A DNA stretch of 64,000 nucleotides from Octopus sinensis (lineage: Eukaryota), in the NCBI RefSeq assembly GCF_006345805.1, contig NC_043000.1:129642001-129706000 (forward strand), written 5' to 3'. Positions 51,731 through 51,902 of the stretch are shown one piece after another. Within the stretch, counting starts at the first letter, position 1. Each line of letters starts with the position of its first letter. The notes beneath the pieces are model-generated. The model was not told the origin of the DNA, did not search any database, and saw only the letters and a list, made by a program, of their open reading frames with translations. The position numbers and the translations under genes were made by a program.

Positions 51731-51790
51731 TCCTTAAATCCTTATAAATGTTTTAGCCCGAAGGCCGCGGCCATGCTGGGGCACCACCGC
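51731..51790 (-). mobile_element. Isolated LINE/SINE 3' tail fused downstream of U6
   Basis: GCGGTGGTGCCCCAGCATGGCCGCGGCCTTCGGGCTAAAAC followed by a degenerate short repeat (ATTTATAAGG ATTTAAGG). Matches the GGCGGTGC.CCAGCATGGCC.CAG..CTGAAA tail of the SINEs and of the LINE at 5423-5740. Confidence 0.8.
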
Positions 51791-51794
51791 TGAG

Positions 51795-51845
51795 AAAAAA
51801 TATGGAACGCTTCACTAATTTGCGTATCATCCATGCGCAGGGGCC

Positions 51846-51885
<40 letters not shown>

Positions 51886-51902
51886 ACTGCCGAAGCAAGT
51901 AT
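51795..51902 (-). ncRNA. RNU6: U6 snRNA full-length copy, probably a retro-pseudogene
   Basis: Minus strand reads ATACTTGCTTCGGCAGTACATATACTAAAATTGGAACGATACAGAGAAGATTAGCATGGCCCCTGCGCATGGATGATACGCAAATTAGTGAAGCGTTCCATATTTTTT. ACAGAGA box and AGC triad are intact. Substitutions relative to canonical U6 (human numbering) are G1A, A70U, C77U and C87A. Confidence 0.95.

Follow-up and report, generated by a model that had tools for sequence, protein, structure and literature searches.

Chimeric retrocopies that join the U6 small nuclear RNA (snRNA) to part of an L1 element are a classic finding in mammals, where Buzdin reportedly described them in 2002. Two routes to such U6/L1 chimeras have been proposed, template switching and RtcB ligation; the ligation route is documented (Moldovan et al. 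2019, PMC6789731), and full-length U6 with its U-tract is joined directly to a 3' part of the LINE. L1 belongs to the 'relaxed' elements, which depend on poly(A); its chimeras have target-site duplications (TSDs) of 7–20 bp and L1 pieces that vary in length. Chimeras of U6 with LINEs other than L1 have also been described: with L2 and Mon-1 in platypus; with L2, RTE and AnolisSINE2, and also with L1, in Anolis; and in one uncertain U6–CR1 case in turkey. The process of U6 capture has accordingly been presented as general to non-LTR retrotransposons (Doucet et al. 2015, MBE, PMC4476161). Two further systems bear on these chimeras. SINEU elements have 5' parts derived from U1 or U2 snRNA, are mobilized by non-L1 LINEs, are proposed to have been born by template switching, and form proven multi-copy families with subfamilies (Kojima 2015, PMC4494074). 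CR1 LINEs have as their hallmark a 3' hairpin followed by an octamer microsatellite, both recognized by the reverse transcriptase (Suh 2015, as cited in PMC8665684).

Here we analyse a U6 snRNA fused to a LINE-like tail in a 64,000-nt stretch of the Octopus sinensis genome (GCF_006345805.1, contig NC_043000.1, positions 129,642,001–129,706,000), which we call the window and number from its first letter. Like the platypus and Anolis chimeras, the unit has U6 placed 5' of a short LINE 3' end in the same orientation, with a structured 3' UTR and a simple repeat in place of poly(A); TSDs are short or absent in those animals, and template switching has been invoked for them (PMC4476161). The platypus U6 parts are almost all 5'-truncated, whereas the U6 in the octopus window is full length (PMC4476161). 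The unit differs further from both the platypus and the Anolis cases in its LINE family, in its two-hairpin tail, in a host that appears to be an invertebrate and in being known from one copy. With mammalian U6/L1 (PMC6789731) it shares the full-length U6 whose U-tract runs directly into LINE sequence, as well as the same two candidate routes of formation; it departs from U6/L1 in lacking poly(A) and a clear TSD and in having a LINE piece that is exactly the 3' UTR.

Comparison with the other two systems yields a similar mixture of likeness and difference. The unit resembles SINEU in its snRNA-derived 5' part and in its apparent dependence on a non-L1 LINE, and a birth by template switching is conceivable for both; unlike SINEU, it has a U6 head, a Pol III terminator that separates head from tail, and no family to its name (PMC4494074). 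As in the CR1 3' ends described in PMC8665684, the 3' UTR is structured and leads into a few copies of a short repeat instead of poly(A), the associated ORF2 has endonuclease and reverse transcriptase domains, and SINE copies in the window carry clear 8-nt repeats reminiscent of the CR1 octamer. Unlike those CR1 ends, the tail has two hairpins rather than one, and the repeat unit varies by lineage (8-mer or 5-mer). Full-text literature searches on U6 snRNA with SINE and octopus, and on SINE, mollusc and retrotransposon, returned nothing relevant. The preliminary description of this DNA had taken a U6 chimera with a CR1/L2-group LINE to be undescribed. For non-L1 LINEs as such this does not hold, given the platypus and Anolis cases, but the host and the LINE family are new.

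Anatomy and decay of the U6 copy

The U6 is the sole Rfam match at the gathering threshold within the 64-kb window. On the minus strand, RF00026 aligns over model positions 1–105 from 51902 to 51796 with a score of 106.7 bits (gathering score, 44), and inclusion of a sixth T at 51795 gives a 108-nt copy that ends in T6 (Table 1), just as the preliminary description had it: a complete minus-strand U6. As yardsticks we used genuine U6 genes on two outside contigs, L002 and L003, which have the same unusual GTAC...GTAC 5' stem as the window copy and whose taxon may not be that of the host. L003 carries a single U6 gene; on L002 (an ENA ERZ25069859 contig), at least 27 U6 genes are repeated in tandem over positions 1–20231 with a period of 734 bp, and TATATAA stands at -30..-24 of every one.

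Table 1. Features of the U6–tail unit and of related elements in the window.
Feature	Position	Strand	Basis or remark
Full-length U6 snRNA, putative retro-pseudogene, from +1 to T6	51795..51902	-	Rfam RF00026 and comparison with genuine genes
Junction trinucleotide CTC	51792..51794	-	Between the U6 T-run and the LINE module
LINE 3' UTR recognition module (predicted), two hairpins	51750..51791	-	Covariance model R1
AT-rich degenerate short repeat ending the LINE tail, ATTTATAAGG ATTTAAGG AAC	51729..51749	-	3' limit uncertain
U6 upstream flank	51903..51972	-	No TATA box at -30..-24, no SINE or LINE similarity
5'-truncated LINE copy	5446..5816	-	ORF2 C-terminus 5502-5816, tail module 5446-5486
tRNA-headed SINE copy	25586..25940	+	SINE copy alignment; R1
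Interspersed repeat copies common to the window and L004	3836-3882, 13368-13415, 22567-22612, 23963-24008, 31344-31391, 31528-31573, 57371-57418		

The window copy departs from the genes on L002 and L003 by four substitutions (G1A, CAAGG>CATGG, GACAC>GATAC and TTCGTG>TTAGTG), a divergence of about 3.7% over the U6 part. The altered sites include positions that Rfam marks as conserved, and at CAAGG, GACAC and TTCGTG the outside U6 sequences that we inspected keep the canonical letters. In translation, two of the four substitutions change residues of the canonical sequence PLRKDDTQIREAFHIF, which is exact in 9 of the 15 outside U6-spanning open reading frames (ORFs) inspected; the window copy reads M and S at these places. 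An A–U pair in the 5' stem is lineage variation, and the other four changes are decay.

A functional animal U6 gene, with its type 3 Pol III promoter, has a TATA box some 24–30 nt upstream of +1. At -30..-24, where the genuine genes on L002 and L003 have TATATAA and TATATAT, respectively, the window copy has AAGTTTA. The TATA-like strings closest to this position lie in the wrong place, at -27..-20 and -12..-6, and as a control TATAWAW fell within -33..-22 at 5.4% of random window positions. A TAGACAC motif at about -65, common to L002 and L003 (whose taxon, again, may not be that of the host), was absent upstream of the window U6. Because of the four substitutions and the missing TATA box at -30..-24, the window U6 is a decayed pseudogene and not a gene. 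The preliminary description had named a conserved upstream promoter as a sign that the U6 might after all be genuine, and no such sign was seen at -30..-24.

The upstream flank also resembles no mobile element. Self-BLAST of the window, an output dominated by (TA)n and (CA)n microsatellites, yielded no copies of the flank elsewhere in the window; tblastn with four ORF2 proteins (P0121, P0122, P0272 and P0273) detected no LINE ORF2 similarity upstream of U6; and ARAGORN and Rfam detected no tRNA-like element there. With neither a SINE nor a LINE in the flank, U6 was therefore not inserted into such an element just ahead of its own tail. Two specific versions of such an insertion were considered and rejected. 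Insertion into a SINE had been suggested by a B-box-like GTGGGTTCCATCC at about 52130 on the minus strand, where neither a tRNA-like element nor repeat copies were present; insertion into a LINE copy at the border of ORF2 and 3' UTR was dropped because the same tblastn searches showed nothing LINE-like upstream. Some 350 nt downstream of the unit, at 51336–51399 on the minus strand, lies a stretch with a weak likeness to a C/D-box snoRNA, having UGAUGA near its 5' end and CUGA near its 3' end (Rfam snoR122, 20.8 bits, E 1.6, below threshold).

Identity of the tail and its other carriers

Downstream of T6-CTCA, the sequence continues with GCGGTGGTGCCCCAGCATGGCCGCGGCCTTCGGGCTAAAAC (51790..51750), which is unique in the window at up to three mismatches, and then with a short degenerate repeat, so that the preliminary description was correct here in letters and coordinates. 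The core of this stretch, CAGCATGGCCGCGGCC, occurs seven times in the window at up to three mismatches, against 0.06 expected. The whole unit of U6 and tail spans 174 bp, 51902..51729 on the minus strand. We built a covariance model, R1, from six other window tails and their two-hairpin structure, leaving the U6-linked tail out, and ran it without filters. R1 matched the U6-linked tail over its full length (model 1–42, 51791..51750) at 32.1 bits and an E-value of about 6e-7, which upholds the earlier claim that this tail matches the 3' ends of the LINE at 5423–5500 and of SINE family C. Across the window the model found ten full-length modules, two of them newly seen (23124–23165 and 26367–26408), and it scored an outside LINE tail, on contig L001, at 48.6 bits.

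In the U6-linked tail, hairpin 1 occupies 51788..51769 (core GG.GUGC-CCCA-GCAU.CC) and hairpin 2 occupies 51767..51754 (GGCC-UUCG-GGCU). RNAfold returned an identical two-hairpin fold for this tail and four LINE or SINE tails. In an alignment of 13 tails, which was fitted to the R1 model and so favours the structure somewhat, 95% of cells pair, compared with 20–43% in slid controls, and hairpin 2 has CG<->UA double changes at two pairs. The AT-rich piece after the GC-rich 42-nt module reads ATTTATAAGGATTTAAGGAAC, and its position matches that of the approximately 8-nt repeats (GAGTAAAT)n of the SINEs, of (AATTA)n on L004 and of TTATAAATGAATAAATAAATA on L005.

Autonomous elements with this tail were recovered outside the window. 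A search with the C-terminal peptide of the window LINE led to P0121, on contig L001 (an NCBI assembly), and from P0121 an exhaustive search of representatives then reached P0122, a protein of 984 aa with Exo_endo_phos and RVT_1 domains on contig L004; P0122 has relatives in P0272 on L005 and P0273 on L006. The module begins 2–18 nt past the ORF2 stop in the four LINE 3' ends (L001, L004, L005 and L006). On L004, L005 and L006 it begins 4–18 nt after the stop and is followed by a short repeat; the module is therefore approximately the whole LINE 3' UTR. Taken with the R1 match, and with the intact ORF2 of L004 and L005 with its Exo_endo_phos and RVT_1 domains, this shows the tail to be the genuine 3' UTR of an autonomous LINE that has both endonuclease and reverse transcriptase. 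The CTC at the junction may itself be the first bases of that 3' UTR; on L004 the same CTC stands immediately ahead of CGGTGGTGCCCC, six bases past the ORF2 stop codon.

Sequence comparison places the U6-linked tail nearest to L004 and L005, and not to the window SINE or the window LINE fragment. A 23-mer, CGGTGGTGCCCCAGCATGGCCGC, is identical in the U6-linked tail and L004, with CTC ahead of it in both, and identities amount to 50/64 with L004 and 40/47 with L005. BLASTN of the L004 and L005 tails gave 51789–51742 as the top match in the window, at 86–87% identity. The two LINEs have the same TTCG loop in hairpin 2 and the same TTATAA repeat start as the U6-linked tail, placed on L005, as in the window, right after AAAC. 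No parent LINE with exactly the U6-linked variant (3' UTR ...GCGGCCTTCGGGCTAAAAC) was found among the LINEs recovered. A second repeat family, opening with CTACCCACAAGGGGCTA..., starts in the 3' flank of L004 and occurs at least seven times in the window; because L004 and the window have this family in common, L004 comes from the same taxon or a closely related one. Of the interspersed repeat itself, which starts CTACCCACAAGGGGCTAAACA.AGAGGGGACAAACAAG, the window holds at least seven copies (Table 1), and on L004 it lies right after the LINE tail.

The order of elements at the 3' end is that of the CR1 clade, a hairpin followed by a short, usually 8-nt, microsatellite and no poly(A), and an 8-nt periodicity of 0.62–0.71 was measured in two SINE tails. 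By this 3' end and its Exo_endo_phos and RVT_1 Pfam domains, the LINE is CR1-like; membership in L2, Rex1 or another related clade is possible.

All nine other tails in the window are attached to a SINE or LINE body (the one at 11959 judged by eye), and the U6-linked tail is the only one whose 5' partner is neither. The window LINE copy has a frameshifted ORF2 C-terminus, matched by tblastn with the same four ORF2 proteins, a tail that R1 scores at 52.3 bits, and 76.6% DNA identity to L006. The tRNA-headed SINE, about 350 bp long, has six window copies, with tail modules at 25875, 39346, 45264, 53013, 23124 and 26367 (R1, 50–66 bits); the copies other than that in Table 1 end at 45304, 53054, 23165, 26408 and, on the minus strand, 39346. 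The likeness between this SINE and the LINE sets in exactly where the 42-nt module starts, and the repeats of about 8 nt come after the module. The tail at 11959–12000 ends what by eye is an older, diverged copy of the same SINE.

Several further observations concern the window at large. The SINE copy at 52734–53054 on the plus strand, about 830 bp from the U6 element, has an internal duplication of the hairpin-1 region, visible as a partial R1 match at 52978–52995 ahead of its full tail at 53013–53054. On the plus strand, 42850–43287 holds a 145-aa ORF (GHLVRMRDERLPKQLLYGEL...) that by eye resembles the C-terminal region of a different LINE family. A 230-aa low-complexity ORF with long acidic (D/E) and valine runs lies at 32667–33359 on the minus strand, and at 6119–7770 a unit of approximately 823 bp stands twice in tandem, the copies 99–100% identical, owing to a very recent duplication or to an artefact of assembly.

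Origin of the U6–tail unit

With a decayed U6, a LINE 3' UTR as its tail and no SINE or LINE body upstream, the unit is best read as the preliminary description proposed, as a chimeric retrocopy driven by a CR1/L2-style LINE, and we consider it probable that it arose once, as a by-product of LINE reverse transcription. U6 lies 5' and a LINE 3' fragment 3' in the same orientation, with the junction at the U-tract (T6, CTC and module); the U6 is complete, and the full tail module starts within 3 nt of it. A U6 that stops at its RNA 3' end and runs straight into the 3' terminus of a LINE, both oriented alike, has exactly the form of the known U6/LINE chimeras.

The order of events and the enzyme that we infer are as follows. 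Target-primed reverse transcription would have begun on the very short 3' UTR of a CR1-like LINE that encodes a reverse transcriptase and an endonuclease of the apurinic type, carried out by the enzyme of that same LINE; the two hairpins and short repeat of this UTR, about 65 nt in all, would be the part recognized by a 'stringent' LINE enzyme. The cDNA would then have run on into mature U6 snRNA, from the U-tract to the 5' end. At this point the enzyme may have left the LINE RNA for the 3' end of U6 as a new template; alternatively, RtcB would already have ligated U6, through its 2',3'-cyclic phosphate, to a LINE RNA fragment with a 5'-OH, and reverse transcription would have run through the fusion without interruption. 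Both routes give an identical DNA product, and sequence cannot separate them; we lean slightly towards template switching. The 174-bp product would have been dead on arrival, because animal U6 needs upstream promoter elements and none was copied along, and it would later have gained its substitutions. What counts against a chimera is that the unit is not bounded by a significant TSD, that no parent LINE with exactly this tail came to light, and that LINE sequence is confined to the 3' UTR, which would require a template switch only a few bases from the stop codon of ORF2.

The best match between the flanks of the unit is ATTTATAA, of 8 nt, and 13% of random window positions with the same geometry gave an equal or better one. 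This string, which stands right after AAAAC, most likely belongs to the LINE tail rather than to a duplicated target, because L005 has TTATAA at the same place. The earlier statement that no convincing TSD was present stands, and the weak candidate offered with it is probably tail sequence. Inspection by eye of one SINE copy also revealed no obvious TSD. Platypus U6–L2 chimeras have TSDs of 1–9 bp, present in 72.5% of cases (PMC4476161). The lack of a significant TSD at the U6–tail unit would fit a LINE of the stringent type.

The 9-mer that the preliminary description saw in both U6 and tail is indeed there: AGCATGGCC is the longest string that the two have in common, and 0.7% of shuffled tails have a 9-mer in common with U6. 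It is invariant in 13 of 13 tails and so is a property of the LINE and not of the U6 fusion, and in U6 it occupies nt 53–61. Because it lies inside U6, far from the junction, it has no part in the formation of the junction, and its presence in both partners is most likely a coincidence. The invariant CAGCAUGGCC of the recognition hairpin, found also in U6 (as AGCAUGGCC, nt 53–61), allows a bolder idea, that U6–tail fusions recur in this genome and that the LINE enzyme might bind U6 directly and favour it as a partner for template switching. In another version, copies that landed beside promoters could act as sources of a first U6-derived retroposon lineage; we regard these ideas as very unlikely.

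The unit could also be a simple juxtaposition, in which a copy of the LINE 3' UTR was inserted downstream of U6 or a U6 retrocopy landed before an orphan tail. Such tails are common (ten in 64 kb), CR1-type copies are usually heavily 5'-truncated, no TSD surrounds the whole unit and the U6 has a weak TATA-like TTTATGTA at -27..-20, all of which would suit independent insertions. Yet given some nine further tails in 64 kb, counting both strands, the expected frequency with which one starts, on the strand of a given U6, no more than 10 nt 3' of it is about 7e-4, which puts chance adjacency at roughly 1e-3 or less; the figure is lower still for a tail without a body, as none of the nine others lacks one. 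The two parts have the same orientation and a gap of 0–3 nt, exactly at the 3' end of the U6 RNA. A T-run gives no reason for targeting, and judging from the mechanism of target-primed reverse transcription, a LINE 5' junction would not be an endonuclease target. The U6 also has neither the properly placed TATA box nor the TAGACAC motif (at about -65) of L002 and L003, and juxtaposition is, in our estimation, unlikely. A functional variant U6 gene with the repeat as a chance downstream neighbour is scarcely credible: the copy is full length and keeps ACAGAGA, the AGC triad and the T6 terminator intact, but the Rfam-conserved positions in CATGG, GATAC and TTAGTG are altered and the TATA box is missing.

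A U6-headed, SINE-like family, in which a master with a U6 head and a LINE tail was transcribed and its RNA repeatedly mobilized by the LINE enzyme through the tail, has precedent in snRNA-headed SINEs (SINEU, with U1 and U2 heads; PMC4494074). The boundary of the fusion is that of the tRNA-headed SINE, with LINE sequence setting in at the start of the 42-nt module, and the unit has its 3' tail in common with a partner LINE. The anatomy nevertheless weighs against a family, because T6, a Pol III terminator, stands at element positions 103–108, between head and tail, and a Pol III transcript would therefore stop short of what the LINE enzyme requires; of four SINE copies checked, three are free of T4 runs. 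It is established that animal U6 has no internal promoter. Its transcription requires upstream PSE and TATA elements (PMC4494074).

The search for further copies points the same way. The window contains one copy in 64 kb. An exact-pattern scan for the junction (U6 end ... CAGCATGGCC) gave no matches in JGI metagenomes, GTDB genomes or IMG/VR, and a scan for the tail variant gave none in JGI metagenomes; these collections probably hold no DNA of the host organism, so that their sensitivity for it is low and the negatives are weak. As a proxy, the 54-aa translation of U6 and tail, which are open together in one frame, was compared with 5.8 billion ORFs, a collection without the ORFs of the window itself, which makes this negative weak too: 380 of them span U6, and none of the best 120 of the 380 runs into the tail in any of three frames. 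One database ORF, P0105, passes from U6 directly into Alu-like sequence (...AFHILGRARWLKPVIPALWEAKAGG...) and looks like a primate U6–Alu chimera; the proxy is therefore able to detect chimeras. With no second copy in the window or in the DNA and ORF collections, and with T6 ahead of the tail, the U6-headed retroposon family envisaged in the preliminary description finds no support, and we think it improbable, somewhat more so than juxtaposition. A candidate for a second, older chimera, at 36120–36199 on the minus strand, was set aside as chance, because neither the Rfam U6 model nor R1 scores it. There, GCAAATTTTAGCGAAGCGTTCAATATTTG resembles the last 30 nt of U6, with a 19-mer that differs from the U6 3' end by three mismatches, and a hairpin-2-like CACAGCTTTGAGCTGCTAAAC follows about 45 nt later. 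The resemblance is probably fortuitous; it could also be the remnant of a very old, 5'-truncated U6–tail chimera.

Significance of a U6 capture by a stringent LINE

Read as a single chimeric retrocopy, the U6–tail unit adds a host and a LINE family to a known kind of event and does not found a new class of element; with one copy, and that decayed, it serves the host in no evident way. It extends a known side-product of LINE activity, the capture of U6 snRNA, beyond vertebrates to a stringent LINE in an invertebrate-type genome, and it lends support to Doucet et al., who regard the capture of U6 as a property of non-LTR retrotransposons in general. The locus also illustrates how small the LINE share that accompanies a foreign RNA can be, here the 3' UTR of about 65 nt alone. 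The same module has been borrowed by the resident tRNA-headed SINE, and the fusion thus bears on how SINEs acquire their tails.
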